Below, piece after piece: positions 17,370 through 43,561 of a DNA stretch of 64,000 nt. Source of the stretch: Parasitella parasitica NRRL 2501. Lineage: Eukaryota; Fungi; Mucoromycota. Location: contig MU619303.1 of NCBI GenBank assembly GCA_025201805.1, positions 107,565 to 171,564 of the forward strand. Direction: 5' to 3'. The notes under the pieces are model-generated. The model saw only the letters and a list, made by a program, of their open reading frames with translations. It had not been told where the DNA came from and did not search any database. The first letter of the stretch is position 1; each line of letters starts with the position of its first letter. Made by a program: the position numbers and the translations under genes.

Positions 17370-17383
17370 GCGAAACCAGCCGC
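17370..17383 (-). promoter_or_regulatory. 3'-UTR hairpin with CUGGUU loop (SRE-like), paralog 1
   Basis: Minus strand GCGG-CTGGTT-TCGC, 24 nt after the stop; equivalent element in the other two paralogs. Confidence 0.55.
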
Positions 17384-17407
17384 ATAAATGTGTTAATAAT
17401 GTAAACT

Positions 17408-17800
17408 TTAAATAGACCATGAAATAGGAATACGACCATCATTTAGTTTAGCAATCTTTTGAAATGCGGCTCTGCTCATATCAACGTCTCCCCTTTTACA
17501 GCCAGGGCATGTATCAACAATCTTTAAGGTGACAGAACCATGTTCACTTTTGACATTAATAGATTTACCACAATATGAGCTTTTCGGGCCAGATCCCATC
17601 CATTCAATAGAAATCGCAGCCACAAGATCATCGTTAGAGTAATCCCCTCCACATGAGCTTCCTCCAACTGTGTAAAATGTACCATCTCCAGTCAACGAAT
17701 CGCGGATATGAAGACGGTTTTTGATGGGAGCAGCTTGCACCGACACGGATAATGTTGAGGCAAAAAATATAAGACTAATAGCTGATAATAAAAATTGCAT
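17408..17800 (-). CDS. Secreted loosenin/expansin-like RlpA double-psi beta-barrel protein (paralog 1)
   Basis: Signal peptide; GDGTFY..G.SCG, CGKSI, IVDTCPGC..GDVDMS..AF, GRIPISW. Confidence 0.9.
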   Translation of the reverse strand: MQFLLSAISLIFFASTLSVSVQAAPIKNRLHIRDSLTGDGTFYTVGGSSCGGDYSNDDLVAAISIEWMGSGPKSSYCGKSINVKSEHGSVTLKIVDTCPGCKRGDVDMSRAAFQKIAKLNDGRIPISWSI

Positions 17801-19439
17801 TGTTGATAGAAGAAGAAAGAGAGAATGTCAGTGATAGCTTATTTTTTTTAGGCAAAATAGGAAAAAAAAAGAGGGAAATAATTCAAGAAAGAGTTCGAAG
17901 ATGTCAAAGTACATGTTGTATTTATATATCTCATCGTGTACCCTTGAAAAAGGTAATAATCTAGCAGCACCAGTGAAAGCAGCAGCATCAACGACAGCTG
18001 TGTTATGTACTAAGGGGGTTTGAAGGGGTTCTGGAACTGGTTCCAACAGTTTTAAATCGATATAAATCTACCATAACAGTACTATAAATATAACGAAACG
18101 GAGGTGTCAATAGTAAATTGTACAATGTATCGATATTCGGGTTTTCTTTGCAAAAGTGTTATTTAGGAAGAAGAAGAGTAATAATTTTTTGTTAGTAAAA
18201 TATACATGTAATGCTTGTTGGCTTACAATAAAGTTTCAGCTTCAGGGACAATGATACTCTACCCACAAATAAAGATAACATCAAGTGATGTTTCCACCTC
18301 AATACCATTTGCATATATAAAAAGCTTTTGTCTACTACGGTATTACCTTGTACCTTACTATCATTATTATTTGGTGTTATGAATATTTAGTGTCATGAGG
18401 AATTAATGTTAATACGTTACACTGGATTATAAATCCGAGAGCGTTTTCGTTACTTTGATAAGTAATGCGAAAACAAACATAGATGTACAATCTCCACTTT
18501 TTTGTTTCTCTTTTTGATTATTCGCGCAATTGTATGGAAGAAAACTGAAATGCTTCGAATTTCATTGTTCATAAGTCTCTTTCGAAGACATATATTATTA
18601 AAACTATGAAAGGTATCTATCAAATAAACATCGCCCCTCTCTTTTTCACTTTCACAAAGTATTGCTGAAGCATGTTTGTGTGTGATTGGCTGTGTCAAAC
18701 TGTAGTATTCCAAGCATGTATTTTCTTGAACTTCTTTTATTAACATGATCATGTCATCCAAACCTATGTAACTGTTCATTTCAAAAAGAGCCAAAATATC
18801 ATGATTTTCTAGATAAGCAGGTACTGTTTATGATGGTTTAATTAGCAAATGAGCCTATAAATATGTCAGGCGAGAGACACTTGCAATAAATGTTTGTGAT
18901 TTTTTTTTTTCATTCTTTTCTTATGAGGCCCCTTATAAATATTAGAATCATTAAATAAAATACCAGAAATATCTATCTTTTTCTTATCGATTATAACAAT
19001 ATGCAGCAATCAAGTGTTGATAGTAATGCAGTAGTAAATACCTACATTGTAGTTGAATAACCATAAACTCAGTTTGTTTGTCGCCATCCCAACCTATTGT
19101 CACTCATGCTCATGTGATAATGGTACATGAACAGTATTTGGTTTTGTCAATGGATATTTTACATAAATAATCAACATCAGATAACTTTTTGTACAAATCA
19201 ACATCGATAATCACGTTTATTGCATTACTATATCAAGACCTTTTTTTAATTACATAAGTTTCAATACTGTTATGCTATTTCCTTCTGACGCATTCAATTG
19301 CTTATTTGGCATATGCAATGATACCGTTTCTTAAAGTAGACTCCTTCAAATGAACTTCAAGGGCATACAATCAGCGATTTCCTGGAGTTCTAAAAAATGG
19401 CAAAACGTAAAAGTTTCTTTTTCAGAAAGCTAAATAAGT

Positions 19440-19955
19440 ACAGATTTTCTTTACGAGGATGGGAAGGAGAGAATTGATGCGATGGAATTAGAAGAGGCTA
19501 ACTTACATCACCTTGGAAACATTAACCCGCAAGACTTTATTACGAAAAACAGAGCTCAGAGTGAATCTCGGTTGATAAAGCTTCAATGTTACTTGCGAAA
19601 AAAAAAACTGTATAATTGAATAAAGCTCTTCAATGCTATCAAGATTGGAATATTTTGGCAAAAGCAAACGAACATAGTTAATAGGCTTGATAATAGTTTG
19701 AGATTCAGCTGATCAATTTTTATGATGATACCGTAATACTCATGCTAGAAGATTGGTGTCAGAAACTTTATGAAAGAAGGATGCAGCCTTTTATTTTTTT
19801 AAAAAAAAACTCACCCTTCACCTGAAAGCAGAAAATCATCAATCGAAAGTTATATAGATCGTATAGCATGGATTGAGAAGTGGAATAAGACAGATATGAA
19901 CCATCTCGAAAACTGGGGTTTTATGGCTCAATCGGGTTTCGACTTCAATACGACA
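19440..19955 (+). mobile_element. Second decayed Tc1/mariner transposase remnant
   Basis: 19860-19950 translates RIAWIEKWNKTDMNHLENWGFMAQSGFDFN, a degenerate form of the W..KW..TDMDF..NCVFIDESGF motif; FLYEDGKG near 19445; many stops and frameshifts. Confidence 0.65.
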
Positions 19956-20279
19956 TCTCCTTGAAGATGATCTATTAGCGATCAAACCCTCCATTACCAA
20001 GTTGTCCTAGTAAATCGTCTTAATTTCAAATCTTCCAACAGACGGAACCTTGGTCATCTTACGATCAAGCACAATTCCACAACAGCGTTAAACGAAATTG
20101 GCACTGTTTATAGTTATAAATAACACAATAAAGTATTCACGTGTCAATTTTTTCATATAAAACAATCGTTTTGTATTTTTCCTTTTGCTCTCCCTCTCTT
20201 TTACCACTATTTTAACATTTTTTATATGCTCATCAATTACTTTTAAAAGTTATTGCGACAACAAGGGACATTCAATTCA

Positions 20280-21271
20280 ATGGTAGACTTTACAAAGGAA
20301 TTTTATGATTTTGATCCATTGCCTCGAACAAGTTGGAAGCCTTCTTCTTCATATGATTCTTGTATAACCGACGAAGGCTATCATACAGATGAAAAACCGC
20401 ATCAGCAAAACAAACATGATAACGAAATACCCATTCTGAAAAGTAATCGCACGATGTATGTACTGTAATCCAAACCAATATAGACAAAAAATCTTGAACT
20501 AACTGCCAAATAATATACAGTCAGATATCGTACACACCACTGACATATACCCTTACAATATTCATAATCCTACTATCTATCCATACAATTTCAAAACAAC
20601 CGTTTCCATGGGCACATACATTTCCACCTGTCTTTGTCTTGTTTCATCTATTTTTTCATGTCGCACACTTGATGGCACATCTGCTCAATTGGCTGCAACT
20701 CGAACGCCGTTGTGTTGTGTATGGCACATGGCTGTATTGGACTGGTTGGCTACTTGGCATATTGCTATTTTCTGAACGTCTAGCTGTTCATGTCGCTCAT
20801 AATGCCTCAACTTCCATCCTATTCTGGCTCTTGATGCTTGAAAGAAGAAACGCCTGGGGTATCATTGTTTGGGAATTTGTTAGTAGATTAGATCAAAATC
20901 TGAACTCCTGGTCATCGTCGTCGTCCTCTGGGCCAGGAAACTTAAAGACATCAAGGCCTCTCAAACTATGGGAATTGGGAAGTTTTCGGCTCTTAGTTTT
21001 TCGTGTCTGGTGCTTGCTAGGAACAGGGAGCTTCTGGGGCCTACTGTACATCGGTCTAGCCAAATCAGATGGCTATGCTTTTAAATATTTGTTGCAAATT
21101 CATCACATTATGAAATTGTTGCTGGTCAGCACAATGGGTGGATTCATGATGATTATATTTTGGAGCTTTTGGACCTTTCAATACAAAGGTGTATTGTGGC
21201 AAAAAGAGTCAAGAAAAGGCATCATTGTTTGGTACAGCGATGGTGTAGCTCATGCTGCCGAGGTCGTGTAA
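20280..21271 (+). CDS. Uncharacterised multi-pass membrane protein; exons 20280-20455, 20521-21271
   Basis: GT-AG intron joins the 20253 and 20639 ORFs in frame; several Trp-rich hydrophobic segments; family not recognised. Confidence 0.7.
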
Positions 21272-21725
21272 TTCTACATTGTAAATAAACAAATGCCCTA
21301 TTCTGATTTTCTCAAGTTAAATTGTACCTACAAAGTGTCTTCTTACCAAGCGACATTACCGATTGCAATTTCATGCATTTCATGACAACCACGAATTCAG
21401 TGGCATCCAATAAAAATATTAGGGATTTCGCAGCTGCTTGAAGGGGCATTAGATGATATACAGATGTAGCATACATCAGCAAACTGAACAAATGTCCTGA
21501 TCATGTGCAAAAATATAATGTAATAAATCAAATGTCAAAACATGACGAAAATCAGTACATCCAAATATGAAATGAAGCAATATGAAGCGGATGATGTGAA
21601 TTGGGGTATCATTTAGTCATCAATAAAATGATCCTACTCTTTATGTATAAGAAAAAAAAAATTAAAAAAAAAAAAATTAAAAAAAAAAAGAGAACTGTAC
21701 AAAATGTAATAGAATAAAAACCGGA

Positions 21726-24700
21726 TCAAATCTTTCCTTTATCGACATAATCCTTGAATTGGAATGAGGTGTCTGTGCTCAAGAATTCATGAGCCAATAA
21801 ATCAACGGCAGTTGGTCTCTTTAGAGGGTCGCTATAAATGAGTGCTGTTAGCCCGTAAATAGCAGATGCAAAAAAGCCCAGCTTACATTATAAAGCACTG
21901 CCTCAAAAAATCTTTTGCACAGTCAGATATATTTTCGGGTATAGTGGGTGTATTTAATCTTCCAAGCTACTCCAGATAATGAATTTATAAATACAGGATC
22001 CAACTCCAAACAATTAAACTTACATTGTACAATGCGGCAATCTGGTTCAAAGCGATCCAAGGTCGTTGCCCTGTTAGCATTTCTATCACAGTGCAACCCA
22101 AGCTCCAAATATCGACCTTGGCGCTATAAGGTTCGTTTTTAACCACTTCAGGGGCCATCCAGTAGATGGAACCGCGAAGCGACATTCTAGAATTTTGATC
22201 GTATACTTCATCGTAATCATTCTTTTTGGATAGACCAAAATCTGAGATCTTGCATATACCATCAACTTCTACTAGAATGTTGGCAGCTTTGATATCCTAG
22301 ATACGAAGACGGTAAGTTGCGCATATACACAATGGGCTGTTACAATCCAAAATTTACTCTATGTAAGATATGCTTTGAGTGAAGATAGGCTAGACCACAA
22401 CAGATTTGTCTTGTAAAGTATTTAGTGAGGGCTTCATCAAATGCACCATGCAATGCCAGTCGACTTGCCACGCTGCCACCGGATACATAATCCAAAAAGA
22501 TGTTGATAACGCCTTCTGTATTATCCTGTCCATAGCCAAGATATTGTACAATGTTCTCATGGTCTAGATCTCTCAAGGTCATGATCTCCTGGTAAAGAGC
22601 TTCAACCATGTCGTGCTGGTCCTCATTGAGCAAATCGGACGCAGTTTTAGGGATTTCAACCTGCTTGACAGCAATAACTTCCCCACTACCAACGTTGAAA
22701 GCCAAGTACACTCGACCAAATGAGCCTTTGCCAATCAATTTACCTCGAATCCATTGCATTGTATCGTCATTCTCGCCGCTAGTACCATGCGAGAGACGCA
22801 TTTGTTTGCTGACCGACGGCAAGCGCGCCATCACGTTCTGGCTACGAGCCTTGAGTTCTACCACACGCTGGCCCCATAGCTTGGTGCTCTTTCGACGCAC
22901 CATTTTGTTGTTTGTGTATCTTCGGCTAGCTTCACGTGCAACCAGTCGAACAGATTTAGTATGACGTTTGGTAGGCTCCACTATAACTTCTTTGTCTAGA
23001 TCTTTGCTATCAAAATACTGTTCCATGTGCTGGAATACGACTTCTGCAGGAGGCCTTTCTCCCCAAAAAACTGCTCCACTAGATTTTTTAAGGGGTGGAG
23101 TAGGCATTGGTTTCTTAGCGGCGGATTTCTGAGATGGATTGATCTGCATTTGATCTAGATCATTGGATATGTCATTTGTGGTATTAGGCATAGCAGCCCA
23201 TAGTTGCTGCTGCTGTGATTGGGATTGAGGCTGCTGTGTAGGGGGTACAGCCCACAAGTTGGCGCACAAGCTGCCTTTGTTTTCAAGCATCTTGTCCATG
23301 TCCGGCTCTGATCGACGCCACGATGTTTGTGGGGATGGTACAATGAGTGGATCACTGCCTGTCCTACATTTTGCAATTTGAGGTGGATCACACAACTGGA
23401 TGCCAACATGCTGTGGTTGCTGTGTGTGTTGAGGTTGTGGTCTCCTCGCTGCTTTTCGGCATAGAGGCTTAAACGTTGGCGAGCTCTTATTCCCTGTGCG
23501 GGTGGGGCTAGTTCATGCACATTAGTACTTACGGAACGGCCATCAAGGCTCGAAGCTTACCTTTGATTTTGCAGAATATCAGCAGTTGGTGATTTGCCCA
23601 ACTCTGGTGTGGATAGGGTAAATGTATAATCGTTGAAGAGCGGGTGATGAGCAATTACAGGTTTTACTAGTATTCGCTGAGATGCCGAGCGATCGGCAGT
23701 GGAGCATAGATACATGATTTCTTGGGGGTCCATTGGCGTGTCTAAATATGATAAAAAGGAGATATTTTAGTGTTTGTTTTGGTCAAAATATGAATGATAA
23801 GATTTACCTGGATCAGAACCATTTTCATGGAAATATTGATACAGATCACAATCACCGCCAAATTGCATACGTCTCAGGATGTGCTGTTTGATGGCCACCG
23901 GGTCTCTCATATTGGTCACATTGAGACTGTACCAAGTGTCCTTGTCTGCCGTAATCTGAATTCTTTGCTCCGCTGGTCTCTTTGATAGCGAAGGCTGCTG
24001 ATGTTCGTAGGAGTGCGACGATGGCGACAGTCTTTTGGTATTTAGCGAGGGCGATGAGGAATGCCAGTTTGCATAAGAGGCCCAAAACTTTGAAATTTTG
24101 TCTGGGGTGGATGATACACGTGCTGGTATCACTGGAGAGGTTCGCCTGGTTCGGTCGTCGTCGCCCGATTCATGCCGTCTATAACGCGGACCTGAAGCTG
24201 CTGAGTTTTGCTGTTGCTGCTGCTGTTGTTGTTGTTGTTGTTGTTGTTGTTGGGTATTAAAATGGAAAGGGTGCACAACAGTTGTCGTTTGCATTTGATT
24301 TAACGGAGCATGTGATCTGAAAGTATTTTTTATTTTGTAGAAAGCTGCTTTTGGCGAGTAAGAGGATCTTGTCGGTGAGGTGTTGCTGTACTTTTTCGAA
24401 AACGGTGCGATCAAATGGTCAGAAGACGGCGATGCTGAAGGCGAAGGTGATGAGGATCCAGCGGAATAGTGGGGTAAATAGCCAATGCCACTGTCTCTCG
24501 CAGTGGTATGATCAGCAACTGTGCTTTGCGGACTGATTGAGGGAATAATTTTAGATGCGGCTCCTCTTTTCCCGTTCTCCCCTAATCTCGTATATTCATG
24601 TAAATTTGTATTAATTGAAATCTATATGATAAGGTTAATATAGGCATTTAGGAGTATTTCGTATTTGTTTAGATTGCCTTGCTTGGTGTGCTCGGTGCAG

Positions 24701-25116
24701 GCTTCTGCTGCTGCCCAGGTGATGTAGGAACTAATGATCTGATCTCGCTCAAAAGTCTCCGTCTTTCATAGTAGGTTGTCATGGTTCTAAGCTGCTCTTT
24801 TAGTGAATAAATTCATGCTAGTTATTTTTGCGACATATAATTTAATACCTGGGTAAATACTCGACCAATTCAGCCAGGGTAATTTGAAAGAATCGTTCTC
24901 GACAAATGCCATGCTCTACATATGAGTGAATGTTGGTTAAAACGAAATTTGCTTTGGCATGCATTGTGTATTACTTTCAAACGTAGAAGCAAACTGGCCC
25001 CAACCCTTCTCTTCCAGCCATCGTGTCACTGTTTCTTGATTCCATGCATCGACTGCCGAGTCTCCTAAAAGTATCCGGATGTCGTTTTTCGTTGGTGGGT
25101 CCAATTGTTTAACCAT
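21726..25116 (-). CDS. BCK1: MAP kinase kinase kinase, Bck1/Mkh1-like (cell-wall integrity), multi-exon, with N-terminal SAM-like domain
   Basis: WIRGKLIGKGSFGRVY, AVKQVE, LRDLDHENIVQYLG, HRDIKAANIL, ISDFGLSK, GSIYWMAPE; Bck1-type RPPAEVVFQHMEQYF and RRKSTKLWG; N-terminal WNQETVTRWLEEKGW. Confidence 0.88.
24210..24252. repeat. CAA/CAG trinucleotide tract (poly-Gln in MAPKKK)
   Basis: (ttg)n/(ctg)n run on + strand; QQQQQQQQQQQQQQ in 23767..24414 ORF. Confidence 0.9.
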
Positions 25117-25451
25117 CGAAATTGGTTGATTTGTGTCAACAAAAAGTAGATGATTTGTCTGGTGTATTTAACAGTAGTGCACAGTAGAAACAAAAGTGGG
25201 TTTAAACAGTTTATACAGCAGTAGATAATAATCAGCTAAAGAAGATGATGAAAAAGAGAGAAGAAAGGGTGAGCAGGTGAGAGTGGACGAGTGAGAGTGA
25301 GAGAGAAAAAGAGTGAAAAAGAAGGGGACAAGGGATGAAATTTAGGGAGAGTAGAGAAACACCCAGTTTTTTATTTGAAAATTAGTGAGTGTAACGTTTT
25401 TGGTTATGTAATCGTTTCAAGTAATGTGCTAACGTTTGGATCCAATAGACA

Positions 25452-26294
25452 TTATGAAATAATACCATCCTTCATCATTGCATCAATCAATTCTTGCAAT
25501 GGCTGGATTTCCTTTTTCTCTAATAGATCAAATTCTTTGGCAAACGATATAAAATGTGCAAATAATGAATTCAAGTGAGGCTCTTCGGATAGAGATAAAA
25601 TCTTATCATAATGGTGGTGGTATATATGTGCAAATAATCGAAACAGTTGTCCAAAAATACGTCGAATAAGCTGTGGAAATTCTCTTGGAAATTCTCGGCC
25701 TACTTTTGTAGGGAATAACGTCTCATCGCCCATCATATTTTGTATACTAGACGCCATGTAGTCAATATACTGTGGTGCTGATAGCCTGATCTTTTTATTC
25801 GAAGCATCCACCCAAGTATACTCAATCCTAAAGTACATCATGATCATTATCCATGTTTACTCGCTAAACACAGTACCTAGTTACCCTGGTCCAGCAGACA
25901 TGGCAGGACACATGTGTGGCGTACAGAAATCAGTGATTGACCCATAAAACATGTTGATATGATTGAAAAATTCAAAAGCTAAAATTCGAAATATCGTCAG
26001 TACGAGTTCATTTATATAAATCCCATAAGAAAACCAACTGTTAAACGCAAGCCATTCATCCACATCGATGTACTTTGGTAATTCAGTGATTGTCTTAAAG
26101 CTGCCTTTGACCAGCATGTGTGTTACATATGGATTGGTTAGAAATAACGGCTTTGTATGATGTGGGAAGCTGGTTGACCCTTTTATTTTGGATAATTTAT
26201 TCTTTTTTCCACCTAAACTGTGTATTCACGATACTATTTAAGAAAAACAATTACAACGCTATGGTTAAGTTTACCTGAAATTTAAAAAACTCAT
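25452..26294 (-). CDS. MOB2: Mob2-type NDR-kinase activator (4 exons)
   Basis: LVKGSFKTITELPKYIDVDEWLA, CPAMSAG, APQYID, FPTK, LFRLFAHIYHHH, HLNSLFAHF. Confidence 0.9.
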
Positions 26295-27689
26295 TTATTT
26301 CTTGTTGTTTTCTCGTGCTACAAATAGGGGTATATGAAGAAAAAAAAAAAAAAAAAAGAAAGTGTGATTCACCACCATTTCAGCTCGTTTCTATCCATTT
26401 ACCCCACAAAACTCAGCTTATAGTGACCATGTGGTACCTCAATGCACTAGTATAGTGTCTCCAACTGATATATGTAAATTGATATTGGAATGAAGCTTTA
26501 CAAAAATGTTTATTAATAAATTAATAATTCATAAATATTGTTGTTAAGTAACAACAAATGTCCAGGTCTAAGTATTGTAAATCGTTTACTTACCTCAAGG
26601 GTTTAAGGTTTTCGATACATTTATATAGAAATAAAAAGACTGATTTCAGAGACGAACGCAGTAAATTGCCATCATTTTGTACATAGTCAATCATCCAAGT
26701 AATGAAAAATATGTCAGGTATGCCATTACACTGTATTAACTGCAATGAATCTAGATTTAAGATACAGGAAAAGTAAAAGTTTAATGAAAACCAAGTGGGT
26801 TTCCAACTACTGAACTTTAATCCCACATTAAAGCCGTTAGAAACATTCTATAATGTAAAGAAACTAATTATTTACAAGGCAAGTCTTGCGTGCTTTTACA
26901 TATAGGAAAAATAAAAGGTTTGGACCGAGATAAGTGATTTCGATAAAAAGTATTTGAATAGTCATTTTAATCTATATAGTTTAACGAAGAAGAGAAAATC
27001 AGCATCGTTTTTAATTTATAATAAGCTCGATGCAAATGACATTTGCTCCATCCGATTACATTGACATCCACCAAAAACTTTGAAATTAAACCTGGATTTA
27101 TATAATATCTAAATAAAAATAAGGAACCACGATGATTTTTGTGTTTACTTTTAGGATACTGGTTCAATTGTTTAGTAACATTAAATCTGATATATTTATT
27201 ATAAACAATTTTTTCAAAATAATCAAAAATAAGGGTGATGCGGTATACCCTGTTTTATACAAATAAAGGCTAAATATGCCATACGTGTAAAATAGTTATA
27301 CTTGCACTAACTATATTATTCATTGCTGGTAACTCTTTACAAGAAACAAGTTACAAGTAATAATTGAGCCTCTTGTAAATTTCTAGGCTGTTCAAAGATT
27401 ACATCAAGATCAGATCGCAGTATTTAGGTGAGACATACTGTCCACATCTACTCTTGACAGTAAAATATAAGAATAGATCTGTTCTGAGATATAATGTAGT
27501 TTAATGATGTTTGGCACTTTATCTTGTTGAACATCAGATGAAATGTGAATAAACATTTGATTAAGACATATCTCACGTCAATAAAAGTCTTTATTTTTGT
27601 GTCTGGTTCTGATATTCAAAGAAGGCCTTTTTTCACTTTTAAATACCATTTACACGACAATTTATTATGTCCTTCACACTGGTACGACA

Positions 27690-28813
27690 GAGTTGACTTG
27701 GACTACCTGGCAATAACATTGGCTTCCGTGTTTTCACTGATATCTATAAAGTTATCACATAATATCACAAATTTATATATCAGAATTGCAAGTAATCGCT
27801 GATAGGCTACTATAAAGAGCAACATAAACACTGTCTTATGCCCCATAAAACCTGGCATGATCATTGCTATCTGAGCATAACTTGATTTCCACTGGGCAAT
27901 GTCTCTATCAAACGTTTCTCAGTTTTCTGGATCGGGTTTAAAATTAAATCACGTGTTTTTTGTATTCGTGTGTGAAGGCATTGTTGGAATAATACCAGAA
28001 ACTGTAATGGGTAATTTAACATTGCTGGATATCATCGATTTTGAGTGCAGTAGGAATTCATCTGAGAATTTAAATACCGTATGATTAGATACTTTATTAT
28101 GCTTGTGATGATTAAGAAACTTACATTTGAACCCGAAGCTAGAAAGTCTGCTAAGACCAGCTTAGAGACGACGAGATATGAAGATGGTCTATGAATAGAA
28201 AGACTCTGATGGTAGATTTTACAAAAACTGTTGCTCTATCGACAAAGCTGGATTACATATAAATTTGAGAAATCTTTGGGCTAGAACAGATACTGGAAAA
28301 CGCCCGTTATAGTGAAGGCAACTAAAATAAAGACTCCTTCTAATGTAATTATTAGAGCTATACATGCATCTAGTGTTATTCGTGTAGTGGTAAAGAAACC
28401 ACCCCAAAAAAAATTAGTTGAGTGAAAAAGGCATCCACACAAGCAAGAAATGAAAAGTAGCAAAGGGCAAAAAACATACTATAAATTAGTTTATTATAGA
28501 AAAACCAGCTGCAGAGTACCTTGATAATAACACCGAGAGCAATGCGCAAGATAGTTTAGAATTGAAATCAAAAGGTACAACAACTGCCTACTCTATCAAG
28601 TCTATGAATATCATGAGAATCAATAAAGATCTAAAAAAGAGTTTTTTTCGTAATGTATTCAAAAATCATACGTCCTGGCTGTAAGCTGATGTATCTGCCT
28701 CGATATTCCCCTAAATTAAACCTACTTGAATAGTTTTGACAATCTGAAAAGGAACACAAACTATTGACTAAAGAAAACATGTTTGGTAGAATTGTTATGG
28801 CATGTAGTGCCAT
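27690..28813 (-). pseudogene. Possible decayed membrane-protein gene
   Basis: Hydrophobic reading-frame fragments separated by GT..AG-like gaps, with in-frame stops (e.g. SLLILMIFIDLIE*AVVVPF); family not recognised. Confidence 0.3.
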
Positions 28814-31571: not shown

Positions 31572-32690
31572 TTAAAATGCCATATTCATTGCTCTCATTG
31601 AGTACTCAACGCCCAAGAATGTGGCAGCATTGGCAGGGAAAGCTCTCAACATAGCAGGGCCAAGACCCTTGAACAAGGCAGCAGGGCCGTCAGTCTTAAT
31701 TGTCTTTTTAAGACAATCGCCTAAACCACTATATGTACCAGCAGGAGCAGATTGCAAACGAGATTTAAGCACATCGGGAGGAATAGCGATGGTCCACATA
31801 GCAACGCCAGCCATACCTAGTTCAATAATCAATATTTCAGCCTATTTTAGCTTTAGAATGGCAAAACTTACCGCCAGCAAACAAGACAGCACCGAAGCTC
31901 AGATCTTCAGGGCGGGCGCCTTCAGGAGTAAGACCCTTCTTGATTAATTCGTAGGCAACAAAGTAGGCAGCAGAACCGGGTGAATCACGCAACAATGTAG
32001 CACCAGTGCCTCTCCAGATGGAGCGAACACCACCTTCCTTGTACAATTGACGAACAACATCCAAAGGTCCCTTGTACTTTTGCTCACCGCCTTGACCTTG
32101 GATTTGCATCAAGACCTTGACACGCTCGGAGGGTGCCATGAATAAAGTGGTAGGAATAGCAGAAAAGGCACCAGCAAAGGTAATCTCGGCCAAACTGAGT
32201 TGTTTGCTGGTATTTTCTTTATCAGTTCTTAATCCATACACAATCTTCTTGCCTAAATCGTAAGACTATACTCATTGAGATTCAGTATTCTGCTGCCCCT
32301 TTCTTGATCGATATCTATACGTACCCAGAAACTAACTGCGAAAATCGGTGTGATGCTGGCTAATGGGGTAGCCATGCCACGATATAACCCGAAAATGCCA
32401 TCTTTCTTTACAATTTGCTTGAAACAATCAGCAGTGCTCTTGTAAACGCCTTCGCTGGTCTGAAGACGGACCTTGACCAAATCAAAAGGTTGGCTAGTAT
32501 GGAATCATTAACTTTGCCTCCTCTTTTTTNNNNNNNNNNNNNNNNNNNNNNNNNNNNNNNNNNNNNNNNNNNNNCCAACCAGGACAGATGCCATACCACC
32601 GAAACCACCAGAAAGGAAGGACTTGACAGATGAGATGGTATCGTTCTTCACCTCAATTGTAACGGGCTCAATTTGTTCAGCAGTAGCCAT
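31572..32690 (-). CDS. CRC1: Mitochondrial carnitine/acylcarnitine carrier (SLC25A20-like), 4 exons; N gap lies in intron 1
   Basis: KSFLSGGFGG, carrier signatures PFDLVKVRLQ / PSERVKVLMQ / PPDVLKSRLQ, RDSPGSAAYF, RAFPANAATF. Confidence 0.93.
32530..32574. other. Assembly gap (also 39510-39519, 44056-44065, 61323-61392)
   Basis: N runs, three of the four next to homopolymers. Confidence 1.
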
Positions 32691-32814: not shown

Positions 32815-34245
32815 TAATTTCCGGTTGTTCAATTGGATCTTTTGTGTGCAAGATGATGTTTACAATTCATATGAAGATAGCTGGGTTGCATATATCCCAC
32901 TGTCATCACAATTCATTGGGTGGCTTGCTTTGTTCTTATTTTCCCATCACTCTGTAACTGATAAGAAAAGCGGCTATTTAGTCATCTCGTTTTGGATAAG
33001 ATGTAGCGAGCGCTAAATTGGTTTGTTTCTTCACTGTAATCTCTTGCCCTTGCATGACGATTATACCATTGCACGCATAAGTAAGCGATTCTGAATAATT
33101 TATCCATTTCCATTAAGTATCCAGTGTTGCTTTTTCAAGATTCAATAGACCAACTGAATCTATCAGCTTTATGAGGATTATCGACTAAATTAGCAGCATG
33201 TGGCTATTGGGATCCATCTCAAACGACACATAGTCTCCAATTTGTAGTAATAAACACTATGCCTATAGGGATTTCGGGCGTCATTTGATAACAATGGAGC
33301 AGTGAATGGCATTACAATGCCAAAACAGTTGATTAGGTACAAAGTTTTTATGTCAATGAATCTTCAAGTTATTTTTTTTTCTAGCAAGTTGCAATTACAG
33401 GTGGCTTTGGTAATTGTATTAATTGAAGTATCTATCTACTACTACATAAGTGCTGTATTAGCTCATCTATTTGATATTCGTTCCTGCTTTGAATGTATAG
33501 CAGATTATGAACAACTGCGTTGCTAAATTCAGGGGTACAGCGGAACTACAGTGCTAATCATTATGAAACACGCTTTTCAAAGTGAAGCTGCATTAATCAA
33601 TATAAAATCATAAACTTCAAGTCTACCGTAAATCGTTAGGTTTGAAAGCTCAATTGCGAGAGAAATATACGTGCGCAAAGGCAATTTTCATACAAAGTTG
33701 AAGCATTAATTTACCAAATACTAGTTAAAAAGCAAATTCTTTGAACATTTACACTGTTTTACTGATCAAGTCTATGCATAGCTCTTGTGGACTACACCTT
33801 TGTCACACATCAGCGCCAGTATTCGCCAAAACGCGACATGGGCGTAAGCTTCAACCGTGTTGTTTGTTAACTGCAAAATTATCAGCAAATGAGATTTGTG
33901 TATTTGGCAGTAGTTCATGCAAGTACTGTTACTTGACATATTTGATTGCTGAAAACTGCTGGAAAGCAAGACACTTCTAATAAATTTGTACATTGTATGA
34001 AATATCATGTATATTAATCGACAATGCAAGTTTATAATTTGGTTGATTTGTGTATTCCTTGATTCCTCCAGAGAGCTGTAAAAGTCACATGAACACAGAT
34101 CAAGATTGGGTTTTGTTGCAGTTGTTAATTGTCATGACTGAACCAAATGCAAGTTTTGACTTTATTAGACAATTGTTGTCGCATTTTTTACCTTTCCTTT
34201 CTTTCCCTTTTTCTTTTCATACAAACAGCCAAAAATAACGCAGCT

Positions 34246-36502
34246 ATGGAAAACCGAGGTGGTAGGGTCGCAAAGTGGACTTGTGTTAGGATTATCCTGT
34301 AACGTTTACAATAGATTTCTATAACAACAACCGAAGACTGAGAGGCCAGCAGCCAACGGTTTCAAGAGCTGATATGGCCTCTTCTTGGAGATCGCAAAGA
34401 GATCAGATTTTAGATAACCCTACCAAGAAAAGACGAAATCTTGGCGACAAGCCTCATGATGGCCCTGAAAGACTCAACTGTAAGTGCAGCCCTACATGTA
34501 TATGATGGATTATGCCTTAATTATGAAAACAAGGCGTGTATAACACTACAATTCAGCGAGATAACAGAGTCTCTTTATGGTGTGGTGATGTCCAGAGACA
34601 CCATGTCAGAGCTCAACCTACTTCTGCATTTACAGTGTTCAGCGATTCGCAATCGAATCAGTCTTCACCAGCACAACAAACAGGTTTGTATCCTATATAA
34701 TGACTTGATTAGATACAAACTTAACTTTTCTATCTCGTAGTCGGTAGTAGCTTGAATGCAAGCAATCCTTCAGTTGTATTGTTATCACCTCTGCAGCAAT
34801 CCATGAACATGCCTACTTTGGTCAACTCTATACCGCCCTTGACGTTTACTTCAGCTCTTTTAAGATCCCCAGAAATGGCGCTACAGCGTCTACCTGAATC
34901 TCAGTTTGGCTTCAGTCAAATCCCTAGCTTCAATCAACCACCCAACGTATCTGAAAACTTGACTAATTGTTCTCCGCCGTTTTCGCCATGGTCTAATAAC
35001 GCTAATATGTTACAACTCCGAGATGCGAATCAGCGAACTCTGTTTAACAGTAGCATGGCAATAAGCAAGCACAATGAAGTTGCTAACAAGCCTGAAGATA
35101 TTTGCAATCTCAACGCACCAAATAAACAAGCAACACCTACATGGTCAGAGATTGCAGCCGGAGATCCTGAAGCCTATAATCGTCGTCTTAGCACTGTTCC
35201 TCACTCTGGCATTGCCAGTTCTTCCAAAGCAAAGGAAGCAATTTTTTCCAAGGTGGAGCAAGAAAGCTCGGCTTCAGGAAACATGATGGATGTTGATATG
35301 CAAGACGTCGCTTCTACATTTTCAACCGCCATGATGGCTCCTCCCATCCGTGGATCGAGGTACATCACTGATTCATTGGCTTTCATCTCTTCTGGTGTCA
35401 GTAACGATCAAAATATATCTGTCGATCGACCTTACACAGTTCTCAAGGTTAAAAACGTACATGGTCTTTAGCGCTTTCTTTTTTGTTTTTGTTTTTGTTT
35501 TTTCATTTTTAATGAAAGAAGTACTAAATTATACTTATATTCAGATATCCTGGAATGTCAGCGAATCTGACGTTTCGGATGCACTTTCTCGATACAAAGC
35601 CTTTAGATTGCCAGATGTTAAAAAGCTTCCGCAATGCATCCATGCAAGTAGTCTGGTGTCCGATAATTGTCGCTTATTGCTAACATTTTGATTTTGACTT
35701 AGATACTCATGGATGTAAAAAGTGGAAAAACTTTGAACACTGCCTATGTAGAATTGGAGATGAGCGCCTTGTCTGACAATCAGATCAATTCTGTTATCCG
35801 TACTATCAATATACCGCAAGCCCAAGGGCGTCATATTAGTATTTGTCGTAGTTCTTACGATGAACTTTGCAATGAACTATTTTCCAACTGGAGGGGACAA
35901 TTCAAAAATGGCATTGCACATCCTTATACTGACTCCAGAGACTCTTCAACTGCGCAGAAATCACAATATTACATTAGTCAAAAAGATTTGCAACGCTTAT
36001 TGAATGTCTGTCGATTCTTCAAGGTACACAAGGTTACGAAATAGTGTATTTGAAAGCTGAACGTATTCTGCTTTTTCGTTTAGACTTACTATAATCGAAA
36101 ATGTGCTGAAAGACCCTTTGAATATTTGATCACAATCATTATGAACATGCCCTGGAAACAGCCGCATGCTGTTACAACAGCTCAACGTGATATTATTTAC
36201 GAGTGCTACAAACTAGCAACCGGTAAACCCTTTCAATGTATGCATATTTGGGCAACAACGCTAAAGTAACCCACATTTATTCTATAGAGGCTCTCTTCAA
36301 GCATGTCAATCGCACATATCATTCATTTGACGATGAATTGCTACCTAGAATGGTTCGTGCAGCGATTATCTGTGATGGCTTCACTGTCAAACAAAAGAAA
36401 GTTGTACTTTCCAATGCAAAAATGGCATGTCCAAAGGATTTAGAATCTTTCGTGCAAGAGCCCGCTCTCAATGCATCAGGTTTTACTACTTTTCTTCGTT
36501 GA
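34246..36502 (+). CDS. Fungal RRM-like RNA-binding protein with long S/N/P-rich N-terminus, ~8 exons
   Basis: YTVLKVKNISWNVSESDV...CIHILMDVKSGKTLNTAYVEL (RRM-like), ERPFEYLITIIMNMPW; exons joined by GT-AG introns and one GC-AG intron (35644-35702). Confidence 0.75.
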
Positions 36503-37890
36503 GCAAAAAATATCAAGAGGGCTTTTCAATCATAATATCTAGTCCTTCAGACATATTGGTTTTTTCACAGCCTTTTCACAAAAAAAAAAAAAAGCTATCC
36601 AGTCTCTTTTTCATAGGAAAATTTATGCATTAAATAAAAATTCATATTCGTAATGGCAGTTGCTTGGTTTCTTTTTGTTCAAAAATTTAAAGAAACACCA
36701 AAATCATTACAAAAGAATGCTGTGTATTAAGCATTGTGGCATATGTATAGAAGTTTCCACCCTATAATAAAATGCCAAGATACTTTAAACAGCAGTGATC
36801 GAGTGAATTTTGAATTGAGTTTGGGCTTCAAAGTTTTACCGCATCCCCCTTGTACCAGTGGTCATCATTTACTATAATAAATACAGCAGAAGATGGAAGT
36901 GAATGATTATCAATATATAGCATTTCATACTAAAATTTATACATCACAACATTCCATATTCTTTCCTGAAAAGTACAAACTTCTAGCACTAAAGAAATGA
37001 TTGAAGTTCATCATACACAATGAAATGTGAAAATGAACTACACGATTGCTATACAAGCCAACATAAAGACCATACACCCTACGGTGTAACTAATGACAAG
37101 TTTATCGCAAGTGATTAGCATTTGAAATCTTAGACATTATAAAGGCAGCAATTGTTAATTAATTAATTAATCAGTAATGGGAACAGTTTGAAGAGAAAGT
37201 TGGCAAAATTACGATGCGTTTTAAAAGTGATAAGCAAATGATTTGGAATACGCTCCTCGTTCCATGTGGTGAACAATAAATAGTTAGTTCAGAAACAGAT
37301 GGAACACGAGCTCTTTTATTTTATTCTCACAGGCAGTAATCAAAGTTAATGATCAAGATATTTGTGTTTCATGCGAAATGGAGCATCTTAATTATTGGTA
37401 ACATAATGCAAGCACAAGATCGTTGACATCATAAAATAGGGGAACATCTAATGTATGCATGGCTGTGAATAATGCGTATATTTATTGACATATGTGAACA
37501 TATTGTGTGGGATCTTTTTCAAACATAAAAATAAGTACACAGAGCATTAGTCTGAAGAGAAGAGAAGAATATCAATAACGATTACATGTCTGTGTCCTCC
37601 TAAATTTACCATGCACCAACAGACGTACATAGTAATTTTACCAAAATAGGACTTGGACGCATCAACATACATACAAAACAAGTTATATGTTTTTCCTGCG
37701 GATGTAAATCATCGTTTGAAAAAAAAAAGGATCGTTGAAATAAAGAGATACGGGAAAGAGAATGTACATAAAAGAGAAATTATTGAGAAAAGAAAGAATG
37801 TATATGTATATATGTATAATAATGTATGTATAAAATGAATAAATAAATTGGTATTTGGGAGAGAGGGAGGTATCCATAGTTACAGATGTA

Positions 37891-38892
37891 TTATTTAGTG
37901 GATAAACCAGCCAGTTGTATCTCCAATTCATATATACGCTGCTTGTGATTGGTTACTTCTTGTTGCAAGATACGAATGTGATCGACTGATTTTCGCAAGA
38001 TGGCACCTTTATTAGGTTTATTGTTATTGTTACCATTCAAGCCAGTCAATTCGTCAAGCATCACTTTGGGTAACATGGTACCTAACTCTTGAATCCTTTC
38101 GTTGATATTTTCTCGTCTACGGCGTTCAACTATTTTATGTGAGATAATGGGTTAGTTTTTAATTCGTTGATTTGGAATACATATGCAACATACCTGCATT
38201 GTGAGACTCTCTTCTACGTCGTTTCTTTTCAGAAAGGCGTTGCTGACTATATAAATGTAATGATCAGCGACCAAAAAGTAAAATGAATACAAAATATCTT
38301 ACTTGATTTGAACTGATTCGTATTCTTCAAAACTACGAGAGCCTGTAGCACTTAAACTGTTAGCATCCATAGGCTGATGGTGGAAAGCTGCTAATCCGCT
38401 CATGTAACCCATGAAGCTATAACCTGCATTGGCAGGTGCTGAGAACGGTTGATGCTGATCAAAAGACAAAGACTGTCTATTTGTGTTGGGGATAATAGGA
38501 GAGCCCATGCTGATACTATTGTGTCTTGGATGATTATATAGGTAAGAAGATGGCAACGAGTTATTTGAGAATATATCCAAAGAAGATGAGTAATCAGAGG
38601 GCGAGTCTTCTTCTGTATTTTCAGGTTGATTGAAAAAACCTAGATTCTGTTGGTTACGATATTGATCAGGAACATTCAAGCCAGTCGACAATGACTCCAT
38701 ATCATCAAAATCAGGCAGAGGTGGTGAATTCGACAATGGGGATAAAAAAGGCTGGGTAAAACAGTCTGAGAAGTCATCCATGAACATGCCCGATTCCGTA
38801 TGTTGAGAAGCCAATAAATGGTATTCCGTTGGGTTTTTCAACTTGAAAGGTGATGTGCTATCTGTCATATTGGGTTGAATATTATTTTGCAT
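37891..38892 (-). CDS. bHLH-zipper transcription factor (Rtg3/MiT-TFE-like), 3 exons
   Basis: KRRRRESHNAVERRRRENINERIQELGTMLP...KPNKGAILRKSVDHIR followed by heptad zipper. Confidence 0.9.
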
Positions 38893-40292
38893 TTAATAAG
38901 AAAGTTTGTGAAGAAAAAGAAAATGAAGGTTAAATATAAAGGTAAAACGCTCATGTATTTATACCTTTTTCTGTGCAATTCCTGGAAAAGTAATCTCCAA
39001 AAAAGCGGGAATTCGAGCCAATCAAGCCATTGGAAAATGGAATCAGAAGAAAAACGAACATATGATGAATCAAATGAACTTCGAACGCGGGTCAGAGTAC
39101 CTCTTTTTCCCTCTTTTTTTTCTCTTTCAACGTGAGTAATAATTTGAATGTTAATATTTAGTTGTGTGCTAATTCTGTTTCTGCTTGTCTCTCCCTTCTA
39201 TTCTTTTTTTAAAAAATCACAATCAATATATTTTGTCGTGATGGTGGTCTGTGCATTGTCGTCTGTGATCGAATTTTTCAGATCTTACTATAATATGACC
39301 ATACGACAGGTATGGTAGCATGTTCAATACATTCTGTATATGTACGATATACATACATAAATATACAAGATATATCACAAAATGTTATTGGTTAGTCTCA
39401 TATTGTAATGTTATATTTTTACTCCTTGTTTAAATATACTATTTTTGCCATTTTGATCCGAGATGACGACGCAGCGAGATTTGGCAATAACATAATACCA
39501 AATCAGATGNNNNNNNNNNAAAAAAAAAAAAAAAAAAAACCGCCCTCCCCATTGCTATGCACAACTCCTAAGTGTGTAGTAGATATGAAATGCAGAGAAG
39601 CGCACCATCGTAATAAAGCAAGCAAGCTAAAATTCAAATTTCTTTATTAAATTTAGAAGTATTGATTTGTTGTTGGGGAAAAGGTACAGGTACTACATGC
39701 ACACAGAAAAGCCGCTTTAAAATAAATCAAAAATAGTTGCATTGATTACAACGTATCATCGTACTTGTTTCCAATGCATTTAAAATGGCATATCGAAATA
39801 ATTCTTGAGTCCTTATCAGTTATAGAAATGAAAAGCAGATGATATCCATGTCAATAATGCGTATGAGCAGAATATTACCGCAATCTAAGCAATTTTCAGA
39901 TTTTCTCGATACGATTTTATCAGGCCATGTATTATAGCTTTTTTGTTTTTAAGCTTTGACGCGGCAACATGGTACTTATCCTGAATGCATAGTTGAATTC
40001 GGGGCATACCGTAAGTAAAATATACACAAATTCAGTCGATACTTCAAAACTTGATCGTTCCTATTAAGATAGGTCTAAAACGATTGATTGATTCAGCTAT
40101 ACTTCACACCTTCTCGAAACTTGGTAAAGTAATTTCTATCAAACTTTGTAATGGGTTATTGCGCAATTGAAATAAACAGGTTTGAATTCAAACATTGGGG
40201 CTGCAGGTGATTATGTGAATCTATAATCAGAATTCATTTATTTACGTAATGGAAACAAAAACAAAACAAAAACAAAACAAAAAGGTCCACGT

Positions 40293-41107
40293 TTAATATG
40301 GTTTATACCGTTTTTGACTTTTACATGCATTGTCTGAAGACGTATTATTCACAGTGTGAAGTTTCGGTGGCGCTGATGATGAAGGTGATAGTGATGCAGC
40401 CGGTTGTTTGAGTGAATTCAGTTTCTTTTCAATAGCTTTTATTCTTGCATCCATACTAAGTATTAATGAAGAGTTAAATTACTTATCATCAAGCAGTGAC
40501 AAAACAAATATACCTCGAATTCTTTAATCGTTGTCCTTTTAACAATGATAGCGTGGTTGGCTTATTATGCGATGCTTGACCTCGTTTTTTTGCTTCATCT
40601 TGCTCGGGTGTCTGCGATTTGTTTTCTTTAGTACGCATAATCTGATAGCTGTGAGAATATTTACCATATGAGCAAATGATACCACCAGAGATTTCCCTTT
40701 AATAGTTTTACCATGTAGCTGACTTATTGCTTCCAATGCTTGCTAATTACATGAGGTTTAAATCAATAAAATGCGTAGTGCTATACAAAAGAAATATATA
40801 CCTCTTTTGTCTCAAATTCCAAGAAACAATAGCCTCTTGGTTGCCCTTTCTTTTCTCCACTCCAGTGCATCATTACTTCAATAAATGTAATTTTACCAAA
40901 TGGTTTAAATAGTTGCATAATGGCGTATCTAACTTGTTAGTTACTTTTAAGAAAATAAATTGTAAAAATAGATTACTCTACTTACTCATTGATATCTTTA
41001 TCTAAATTACCAATGTACAATCTCTGATAGATCTTATGTTAATAATGTAATATTGGTTTAAACAACTTGATCCCAACCTTTGTATTTGCGCTTTTCGTCG
41101 CATTCAT
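40293..41107 (-). CDS. Single-RRM protein, RBM18-like, multi-exon
   Basis: RLYIGNLD (RNP2), GQPRGYCFLEF (RNP1), LHGKTIKGKSLVVSFAH, C-terminal RYKPY*. Confidence 0.8.
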
Positions 41108-42052
41108 ACTGAAATTTGATACTGGGTAAAAAAAACGGATCGATTACTCCTTTGAAGCCCAAACATGAACACACCAGTTGGACTGCATTATTTTGCTGGA
41201 CCCAAACTCAACTATAACCAATTTAGTTGCTACTGTACCTACCAACGTCGTTTCCATGGTCCAGCTGTCAAAATATTTTGGTTGCTATGATACCCAATAC
41301 AATTTCAAGAGTGACGATAGATTCTATGTTGGACAGTACAGATCCAAGAAAAAATACCTACTTGTTGTGTGTTGGCGTGTGCCACACTTGCTAACTGACG
41401 AGCTTATACATTTTATATGAGTATAATGAACATAGAGAATAAAGCACAATTCATGGCTCTGGGCCCTTGTTTTTTCAAATCAATCATCACCTATTGTACA
41501 CTAGACTAAAAGTGATTGATTATTTCCAAACATAACCTCAAATAGTAGAACAGTTGAATGGATATGAAATTGCATTCGCCAATAAGATGTTAAACTATGA
41601 GGACCTAGACTACACCTCATTTATGACATGATGGTCTTTATTGACTCAGATGAATAATTAGATACGGGAGAGAAAAATCGGCGAATTTGCTAATTAATGA
41701 ATTACACCATATGGCTATATATTATCATTATCTATAAACTTGAAAAACAAATAGAAAGTCAATAGATACATACTCACGCTATAAATTAAACAAATTAAGA
41801 AAACCAAAGAACGAGGAGATAAAGTAATAATAATATAGACAAAAGGTTTAGATCTCTGTGTTGTTCTCGAACCAGGCTGCTAATTTTGGTCCACCGCTTT
41901 TGGCAGACGTTCATGGATAGACATTGGTATAATCACATTTAATGGGTTCCGCATCAATTATCACGCAAGTATAAATAGAAGTATCGACGTTTGAGTCTTT
42001 TTGATACAACATTCAACCAACCTTCAACTTCTTCTTTATATATATAAAAAAA

Positions 42053-42063
42053 ACGCTGGTCGT
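42053..42063 (+). promoter_or_regulatory. 5'-UTR mini-hairpin with CUGGU loop (SRE-like), paralog 2
   Basis: ACG-CTGGT-CGT, 3-bp stem; counterpart at 43090-43100. Confidence 0.35.
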
Positions 42064-42100
42064 ACTTATTACATACAGAAACACAGAACATACTTTAAAA

Positions 42101-42487
42101 ATGAAGACATCTATCACTGCTACTCTTATTACTTTGGTTGCTACATTTTTCATGGCAGTTCAAGCTGCTCCTGCTAAACTTGAAGCTCGTGACTCCATGT
42201 CTGGTGATGCCACTTATTATTCTGTCGGGTTAGGATCTTGCGGCGATACTAACTCTGATTCAGAGCTCGTAGCAGCTCTTTCTGAGGAATTGATGGGGAC
42301 TGGTGCTGATGGATCTTACTGTGGTAAATCTATTACTCTAAAGGGCGAAAATGGAAAATCAGTTTCTGTCAAAGTTGTGGATTCATGCCCTGGCTGTGGT
42401 AAGGGTGATGTTGATCTTAGCCCTACCGCCTTCAAAAAACTTGGTTCTTTGGACGCTGGTGTCATTCCCATTACTTGGTCGCTTTAA
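42101..42487 (+). CDS. Secreted loosenin/expansin-like DPBB protein (paralog 2)
   Basis: Signal peptide; GDATYYSVGLGSCG, CGKSI, VVDSCPGC..GDVDLSPTAF, GVIPITW. Confidence 0.92.
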   Translation: MKTSITATLITLVATFFMAVQAAPAKLEARDSMSGDATYYSVGLGSCGDTNSDSELVAALSEELMGTGADGSYCGKSITLKGENGKSVSVKVVDSCPGCGKGDVDLSPTAFKKLGSLDAGVIPITWSL

Positions 42488-42510
42488 ATTTTTTTAGATC
42501 TATTCGTTTT

Positions 42511-42525
42511 TGCGACTGGTTCGCA
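42511..42525 (+). promoter_or_regulatory. 3'-UTR hairpin with CUGGU loop (SRE-like), paralog 2
   Basis: TGCGA-CTGGT-TCGCA, perfect 5-bp stem, 23 nt after the stop. Confidence 0.6.
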
Positions 42526-43089
42526 GCTATTCGTCTTTTTATCATTTAGATGAACAATAAAACCCTTGGCTTTTTTCGCACATTATTTCTTGCGCAGTGA
42601 AGTTTATCTAACATCTTTATCTATAAACACACAAACGGTTAAGGCTATGCGCTCTAGTTCCGCGAAATTCTTTCTTGTACTTTCAAGTTTGACAACTGAA
42701 CATTGAATACAAGCTTGTCATTTCTAGGATAAGGAAATGATTATGATGAGCCTTAAGTCCGAAACAAAGTTTAGAGGCACTGTATGGACCTTTTAATTTC
42801 TTTAAATAGAGGAAGATCCCAGGTTAGAATGATTCAATCTACAGCTGTGCTTTTTGACTCTGTCGTGGTTTATTGGAACAGCTCCTTTTGGACAATATGT
42901 ATTGCCAACACACAGTGTGCGCCAGATTCTCGAACAAAATAACTATATAGAAATACTACATTTTTCTCTACTTTAAATCCATTACGAGGGTCAATTAAAC
43001 TTACCAGCAGGTCTCAGTTTCTTCCCAGATGTAGTTTCATTGTAAAGTATAAATACCAAACCCTTTATCGCTTTCCTTGCTTAAAACAA

Positions 43090-43100
43090 ACGCAGGTCGT
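43090..43100 (+). promoter_or_regulatory. 5'-UTR mini-hairpin with CAGGU loop (SRE-like), paralog 3
   Basis: ACG-CAGGT-CGT; differs from paralog 2 only at the free N of CNGG. Confidence 0.35.
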
Positions 43101-43129
43101 CGCCTTATAAACATCGATTATATATAACC

Positions 43130-43510
43130 ATGCAAGCTTTTTTCTCTACTATTTTTTGCGTCATGCTTGTGCTACTCGTTGCTGGTCAAGCCGCCCCTGT
43201 TTCCAGTATTCAGGCTCGTAATTCCATGTCCGGCGATGCTACCTATTATGATGTCGGTTTGGGTTCTTGTGGCGATACAAGTTCTGATAATGAGATGATT
43301 GCTGCACTCTCAAGCTCTCTCATGAGTGGTTCTAATAGTGATTTGTGCGGAAAATCTATCACTGTTAAGCATTCCTCTGGATCTGTCACTCTCAAGATTG
43401 TTGATTCGTGCCCTGGATGTTCCGAAGGAGATGTCGATATGAGTAAAACTGCTTTTAAGAAGCTCGGAAAGCTCGGTCAAGGCCGTATCCCTATTTCTTG
43501 GTTTCTTTGA
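43130..43510 (+). CDS. Secreted loosenin/expansin-like DPBB protein (paralog 3, tandem with paralog 2)
   Basis: Signal peptide; GDATYYDVGLGSCG, CGKSI, IVDSCPGC..GDVDMS..AF, GRIPISW. Confidence 0.92.
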   Translation: MQAFFSTIFCVMLVLLVAGQAAPVSSIQARNSMSGDATYYDVGLGSCGDTSSDNEMIAALSSSLMSGSNSDLCGKSITVKHSSGSVTLKIVDSCPGCSEGDVDMSKTAFKKLGKLGQGRIPISWFL

Positions 43511-43543
43511 ATATTACATATTCTGGCTATACTTCTCTTTCTA

Positions 43544-43561
43544 TAGCGACTGGTTTTGCTA
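43544..43561 (+). promoter_or_regulatory. 3'-UTR hairpin with CUGGUU loop (SRE-like), paralog 3
   Basis: TAGCGA-CTGGTT-TTGCTA, 6-bp stem with one G-U, 33 nt after the stop. Confidence 0.6.

Follow-up and report, generated by a model that had tools for sequence, protein, structure and literature searches.

Smaug recognition elements (SREs), the targets of yeast Vts1p, Drosophila Smaug and mammalian SAMD4, are short stems with a CNGGN0-3 loop in which U is favoured at position 2. The CNGGN0-3 loop on a stem is the consensus (PMC4053848), to which Vts1 adds a preference for a G before the loop, for CUGG and for loops of five nucleotides (PMC4053848; PMC3045596), and in yeast such sites are enriched in coding sequences (PMC2573929). 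We examined hairpins of this kind in a 64,000-nt stretch of the Parasitella parasitica NRRL 2501 genome (contig MU619303.1, positions 107,565 to 171,564; hereafter the window) and conclude that they are probably Smaug/Vts1 recognition elements in the mRNAs of loosenin-like DPBB genes of Mucorales. They share with SREs the short stem and CNGG loop, a G:C closing pair in the leader copies, the occurrence of several sites per mRNA and the presence of a cognate SAM protein. Unlike the yeast sites, they are positionally conserved in both untranslated regions (UTRs) of one gene family, and they depart from known SREs in belonging to an early-diverging fungal lineage, in the many 3-bp stems of the leader copies and in a third site with a UNGAU loop.

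The mRNA strand of these genes bears one to three stem-loops, namely a leader CNGGN hairpin, a proximal 3' CNGGN1-3 hairpin and a distal 3' UNGAU hairpin, with flanks at chance identity. The original prediction described the proximal element after three DPBB genes (gene 1, 17408..17800, minus strand; gene 2, 42101..42487, plus strand; gene 3, 43130..43510, plus strand), and each of these hairpins was confirmed in sequence and position; the leader and UNGA-loop elements had gone unnoticed. The gene 1 copy (17370..17383, minus strand), the weakest of the three, has a 4-bp stem including one G-U pair and a CUGGUU loop, that of gene 2 (42511..42525, plus strand) has 5-6 bp and a CUGGU loop, and that of gene 3 (43544..43561, plus strand) has 6 bp and a CUGGUU loop. 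Their spacing from the stop codon is 24, 23 and 33 nt, respectively. A CNGGN0-3 loop stands at the stem tip of all three and of both leader hairpins in the window. The 3' UTRs around them are otherwise unalignable, as had been claimed, with a global identity among genes 1-3 of 0.52-0.55 that falls within the range of shuffles (mean 0.50, maximum 0.57). Such a hairpin arises in 0-3% of dinucleotide shuffles per UTR, and its density across the window is ~0.03 per 120 nt.

The comparison covered 15 Mucorales loosenin genes, comprising those of Parasitella and the homologous loosenin loci of M. plumbeus, a Mucor-like Logan assembly, Mycotypha, Benjaminiella, Gilbertella, Rhizopus, Sporodiniella, Halteromyces and Absidia. 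The predicted enrichment over shuffled sequence was found: in 11 of the 15 genes a 3' CNGG hairpin lies in the first 120 nt after the stop codon (dinucleotide shuffles predict 0.13), with none on the antisense strand and one in 40 neighbouring genes. The canonical minimum of four base pairs is reached by the three 3' hairpins of the window (4-6 bp) and by 11 of the 15 homologs. When all 64 loop classes were ranked over the 3' 200 nt, CNGG came first (11 vs 0.17 expected) and UNGA second (9 vs 0.95). The 3' CNGG stem keeps its pairing through G-U intermediates and through U-A, A-U or C-G at one outer pair; Gilbertella has A-U in place of G-C, and in Benjaminiella and Rhizopus A/U runs are inserted simultaneously in both arms. 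The reported invariance of CUGGU held within the window and gave way across species to variation at loop positions 2 and 5, as expected from the CNGGN consensus. No 3' CNGG hairpin was found in the Halteromyces and Absidia loosenin genes.

A covariance model built from six copies placed four Parasitella loosenin sites at ranks 1, 2, 3 and 5 genome-wide; three of these four had been included in its training, with gene 2 left out. The fourth close loosenin paralog of the Parasitella genome (G000:C224) has the same 3' CNGG hairpin. Six further matches in G000 with E-values of 0.8-10 (C104:61924-61945, C20:61119-61140, C3:37985-38006, C10:33899-33920, C174:32517-32538 and C54:138935-138957) are candidates for other targets.

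Common ancestry of the genes, the shortness of the motifs and non-significant folding z-scores would all be expected if the hairpins were functionless inherited remnants or chance matches. We consider this very improbable, since the elements are retained over the span from Mucor to Absidia although the identity of the flanks has drifted to shuffle level. The GCGA hairpin that is usual and ancestral has decayed in M. plumbeus b, where an all-A/U stem with a CUGGU loop is found near the stop codon. Weaker enrichment also extends to ten more distant Parasitella DPBB paralogs, four of which carry hairpins (0.69 expected, P 0.003).

Upstream of the coding sequence, an ACG-CNGGN-CGU hairpin occurs in 12 of the 15 genes against 0.08 expected from shuffles, with none antisense and none in 40 neighbouring genes. 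In the window it reads ACG-CUGGU-CGU with a G:C closing pair before gene 2 (42053..42063, plus strand) and ACG-CAGGU-CGU before gene 3 (43090..43100, plus strand), in each case between a TATA-like box (41970 and 43048, respectively) and the ATG. Halteromyces, Absidia and two distant Parasitella paralogs also have it. Among 14 leader sequences, U, A and C occur at loop position 2 and all four bases at position 5, with the C, G and G of the loop and the two innermost pairs invariant; judged by sequence, this variation is the pattern of an SRE that includes the G:C closing pair preferred by Vts1. A leader stem of at least 4 bp was present in 7 of the 15 genes. Genome-wide, the leader pattern had 11 matches in Parasitella, four of them loosenin leaders; the others fall within coding or antisense sequence or in DNA that has no assignment. 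In its loop and closing pair (G-CAGGU-C), the gene 3 leader is identical to stem-loop alpha of the hepatitis B virus post-transcriptional regulatory element (gCAGGUc), which differs in being viral, in its long stem and in having human readers, SAMD4 included, with different outcomes. ZCCHC14 is a human reader of that stem-loop. By eye, the leader of the G000:C81 paralog (L138) has a CUGGU loop on two inner pairs, followed by a 2-nt bulge and a six-pair stem.

Further downstream, a hairpin with a U(U/A)GAU loop was observed in 8 of the 15 genes, on the sense strand only, and in none of the 40 neighbours. The copy in the window follows gene 3 (43624..43636, plus strand; UCAC-UUGAU-GUGA), where its inclusion in the mRNA is putative. 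Its arms vary jointly (UCAC/GUGA, CCAC/GUGG, CGC/GUG and UCGC/GCGA), and the covariation score of the stem, 0.60 over eight rows, was matched in none of 500 shuffles, a generous figure because one row, Benjaminiella b, supplies most of the double changes. An A/U stem ~10 nt past the stop is capped by CUGGU in M. plumbeus b and by UUGAU in Benjaminiella b, with orthology that is positional only; a loop swap between Benjaminiella b and Parasitella gene 3, which the protein tree does not resolve as orthologs, is suggestive at most. In the Parasitella genome the UNGAU hairpin pattern had 17 matches, compared with 6 for a reversed control. A palindrome-like sequence at 18277-18292 (minus strand), ~490 nt upstream of gene 1, contains the UNGA-element core CACTTGATGT in a different pairing register.

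Both loop classes can be placed under one rule. Only loop G3, presented together with an intraloop pair, is read by the SAM domain of Vts1 (PMC5785220), and a synthetic uUUGACa pentaloop, which has a U1-A4 intraloop pair, G3 and a five-nucleotide loop, binds this domain in a stable complex (cited in PMC2275152); the CNGG and UNGA classes therefore fit one reader. This synthetic RNA was the one case in which a loop of the UNGA form was found described. The Mucorales loop differs from the synthetic one in being natural (UUGAU or UAGAU) and in having a covarying stem across Mucoraceae, Choanephoraceae and Cunninghamellaceae, with Vts1 binding as a prediction.

Palindromic DNA sites for dimeric transcription factors would be most plausible for the leader and for the distal CAC-N5-GTG. 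The leader element keeps its primary sequence without covariation, and the distal one follows an AATAAA by 10-15 nt in M. plumbeus a and Gilbertella, where it might therefore be located at the poly(A) site or past it; the first AATAAA comes only after it in Absidia, Halteromyces, M. plumbeus b and gene 3. We nonetheless find such sites quite unlikely. The elements always occupy the mRNA strand, with none antisense, and wherever a gene has both a leader element and a TATA-like box, the element is the downstream one. G-U wobbles, matched insertions in the two arms and loops of 5-7 nt are hard to reconcile with a DNA site, and a single RNA-binding rule covers both loop classes.

Candidate readers of the RNA elements are encoded in the same genome. 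Four Parasitella loci (G000:C74, C121, C41 and C57), read exon by exon, combine PF25479 with a SAM domain (SAM_2) 1.1-1.7 kb downstream on the same strand, and one SAM exon searched against the PDB gave yeast Vts1 structures as its best match (E 8e-15). The search for a Vts1 ortholog proposed in the original prediction thus yielded four paralogs with the RNA-binding residues retained apart from one Leu-to-Ile change: equivalents of R464, K467, Y468, G497, R500 and K501 and the motifs RLHKY and GARRK are present in all four, and the L496 equivalent is kept in three and conservatively replaced by Ile in the other. Segmental duplication is hinted at by two of the paralogs (L038, L042): downstream of each, and on the opposite strand, lies what seems to be the same sequence. 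Budding yeast has one Vts1 gene. The four vts1 loci themselves contained a few hairpins but nothing consistent that would point to autoregulation. Multi-genus conservation, sense-strand restriction, compensating stem changes, the location of the gene 2 and gene 3 hairpins within RNA-like contigs and the four Vts1 paralogs together give the Smaug/Vts1 reading of the original prediction good computational support, further strengthened by two extra hairpin types on the same mRNAs that obey the same rule. Binding of the hairpins by Vts1-family proteins is, on these sequence comparisons, very likely.

Extrapolating from yeast and fly work, the SAM domain would dock on the G3 of a loop whose bases 1 and 4 form a C-G or U-A pair. 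Several weak sites on one mRNA could act additively, and the intraloop pair, which lies outside the model of the folding program, may add stability. Once bound, Vts1 would bring in factors for deadenylation and decapping and block translation, as yeast Vts1 and Smaug do (PMC9893680), and at the leader site it could hinder ribosome scanning. CCR4-NOT and Eap1 are the factors recruited in the known cases. Given binding, repression or decay would be a fairly likely outcome by analogy with these proteins. The probable result would be a short-lived or translationally gated mRNA, which would confine production of the wall-loosening protein to the times and places of need, and the purpose may be to limit a protein able to bind chitin and alter mycelial growth, as Phanerochaete loosenins do (PMC9888185).

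The same elements might instead be read by Vts1 or another SAM protein with localisation (e.g. to hyphal tips) or stabilisation as the outcome. In metazoans, ZCCHC14-TENT4 stabilises RNAs through CNGGN loops. The conservation evidence fits such outcomes and repression identically, they could be accommodated by the multiple sites on each mRNA and by the four Vts1 paralogs, and the tandem genes 2 and 3 are both covered in an RNA-like run. However, the characterised Vts1 and Smaug proteins are mainly repressors (PMC9893680), and the Parasitella SAM proteins closest to the RNA-binding type have the Vts1 N-terminal family, in searches of which none was aimed at ZCCHC14. We judge localisation or stabilisation unlikely, and the alternatives to repression of loosenin mRNAs by Vts1 rank in falling order as localisation or stabilisation, DNA palindromes and neutral relics. 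A more elaborate and tentative possibility, which we rather doubt, is an expanded Vts1 code in which the paralogs differ in their use of CNGG and UNGA sites, or of leader and 3' sites, and act jointly to gate translation or to bring loosenin mRNAs to where the wall grows. If so, UNGA hairpins would be in vivo Vts1 sites missed by CNGG scans and would mark further targets.

Transcription was gauged from one public run, guessed to be RNA, which has cover over genes 2 and 3 but none over the intergenic DNA. Single RNA-like contigs of this run (42164-42564 and 43186-43579) connect coding sequence with the 3' CNGG hairpin of genes 2 and 3 and would, if the run is RNA, place these two hairpins within transcripts. 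A further RNA-like contig (41666-42099) reaches ~300 nt upstream of the gene 2 TATA-like box and could be an upstream start or the transcript of a divergent RRM gene.

Several observations weigh against recognition by Vts1 as we propose it. The contigs of this run give neither strand nor transcript ends, and that of gene 3 ends at 43579, upstream of the UNGA hairpin. Hairpin energies of -2.1 to -4.9 kcal/mol are weak and not significant against shuffles, local minimum-energy folding of genes 2 and 3 favours another pairing over the hairpin, and minimum-energy folding by itself fails to pick the hairpins out. The two leader hairpins of the window have just 3 bp, below the canonical 4-bp stem, and are predicted to be unfolded or mis-paired. 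Sporodiniella has just a weak 3' candidate with an 8-nt loop. The genes share ancestry, and hairpin counts therefore overstate independence. Covariation, which the original prediction had proposed as a check, was graded by element: beyond the UNGAU stem it was borderline in the 3' CNGG stem, whose score was matched in 28 of 500 shuffles (six in-register copies), and absent from the leader stem, where 14 sequences with an invariant stem are uninformative. In the UNGAU alignment, Benjaminiella b, a row from another UTR position, provides three of the five double-change pairs; without it, two pairs still change on both sides. Because the hairpins are weak and alternative local folds are favoured, the case for Vts1 recognition is built on conservation and not on energy.

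The original prediction had also proposed a regulon of secreted cell-wall-loosening proteins in Mucorales. This is supported for the loosenin/DPBB family of that order, and a wider cell-wall regulon, which may still exist, is not supported by the gene sets and patterns compared here. Mucorales neighbour genes showed no enrichment (3 vs 3.46 expected). Chitin deacetylases, considered as co-targets, gave no clear signal at 23 loci, with 5 sense and 1 antisense CNGG hairpins, mostly poor, and 6 sense vs 8 antisense UNGA hairpins. Exact stem-specific patterns searched genome-wide were not enriched over reversed controls (7 vs 5, 4 vs 3, 11 vs 21 and 29 vs 29), and the inspected matches outside loosenins were located in coding, antisense or unassigned DNA. 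Conservation across fungi was likewise unsupported: unlike the Mucorales genes, the sampled homologs from Dikarya and other non-Mucorales had hairpins in 5 of 23 DPBB genes against 3.96 expected, with 5 antisense. Among metagenome contigs from unidentified fungi (L083, L088, L091 and L119), an intron-containing DPBB clade has two conserved CNGG hairpins ~30 and ~170 nt past the stop, and L083 additionally has a UUGAC hairpin; this clade may be an independent case, although the non-Mucorales genes as a class are not enriched. A single instance in a Trichoderma atroviride expansin-like gene (L127:10379-10460) has a 7-bp stem and a CUGGA loop 55 nt past the stop.

The three genes of the window are intronless open reading frames (ORFs) encoding proteins of 130, 128 and 126 aa (genes 1, 2 and 3), in each of which DPBB_1 (Pfam) is the sole family above cut-off. 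In a PDB search their closest solved relatives were single-domain DPBB proteins and expansin domain 1 (top match 9ce9, E 2e-21). The proteins have a hydrophobic N-terminus, on which their putative secretion is based, and a D-V-D-x-S motif with the conserved Asp. A single DPBB, no CBM63, the conserved Asp and a putative secretion signal are the marks of a single-domain expansin-related protein, and the hydrophobic N-terminus, lone DPBB_1 and Asp motif are shared with the fungal loosenins Bjerkandera LOOS1 and Phanerochaete LOOLs. Loosenin-like is a fair label for the three genes, with wall-loosening activity as a putative property. Phanerochaete LOOLs loosen or bind cellulose or chitin non-lytically (PMC9888185), an activity that is putative for the Mucorales counterparts. 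A protein search of the Parasitella genome returned 22 matches to the loosenin protein.

Gene 1 lies near a convergent Ras/Rab-family gene, an HlyIII gene and a membrane-protein gene (window 13095-21268), neighbours that also adjoin loosenins of Rhizopus, Halteromyces and Sporodiniella, and it is probably the positional ortholog of these. It has no leader hairpin, although its Rhizopus and Halteromyces counterparts retain theirs. Assembly gaps at 32530-32574 and 39510-39519 are outside all genes and all elements. The HLH-RRM-loosenin gene order that spans the gap at 39510 is common to M. plumbeus, Mycotypha and Benjaminiella; the link over 32530-32574 is unconfirmed, and the hairpin claim is independent of continuity across either gap. 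Near the window end, a perfect 9-bp stem with a CGGG loop (63753-63774) was observed in a hairpin-rich stretch. A scan of the window against Rfam returned no family match, and a sigma-70 promoter and terminator scan, irrelevant for a eukaryote, returned nothing.

Control of wall genes by RNA-binding proteins has parallels in ascomycetes. Ssd1/GUL-1 and Mrn1 read linear motifs, unlike the SAM-read hairpins proposed here. They resemble Vts1 in being RNA-binding repressors, with post-transcriptional control of wall-remodelling mRNAs (PMC10512220, PMC8079021). In the papers found, Vts1 of filamentous fungi figures chiefly as a target in signalling or of phosphorylation (Magnaporthe, Cryptococcus). 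Searches for Vts1 with loosenin, expansin or Mucor returned no description of these elements, and no Vts1 mRNA targets are described for Mucorales, in the searchable literature, from which subscription journals are largely missing; within that scope, the loosenin mRNAs would be the first Vts1 targets predicted for this group. The SRE itself is known; as far as that literature can be searched, the lineage, the target family, the layout of leader and 3' sites and a natural, conserved UNGA loop are new.

If the natural UNGA loop is indeed a Vts1 site, the relaxed specificity of the Vts1 SAM domain seen in vitro would be used in vivo, and searches for SREs would widen in all eukaryotes. For Mucorales, where genetic tools exist (Mucor), the loosenin-like genes provide a candidate target family that is concrete and conserved. 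The elements hint at tight post-transcriptional control of loosenins, as would be expected if these proteins act on the fungus's own wall.

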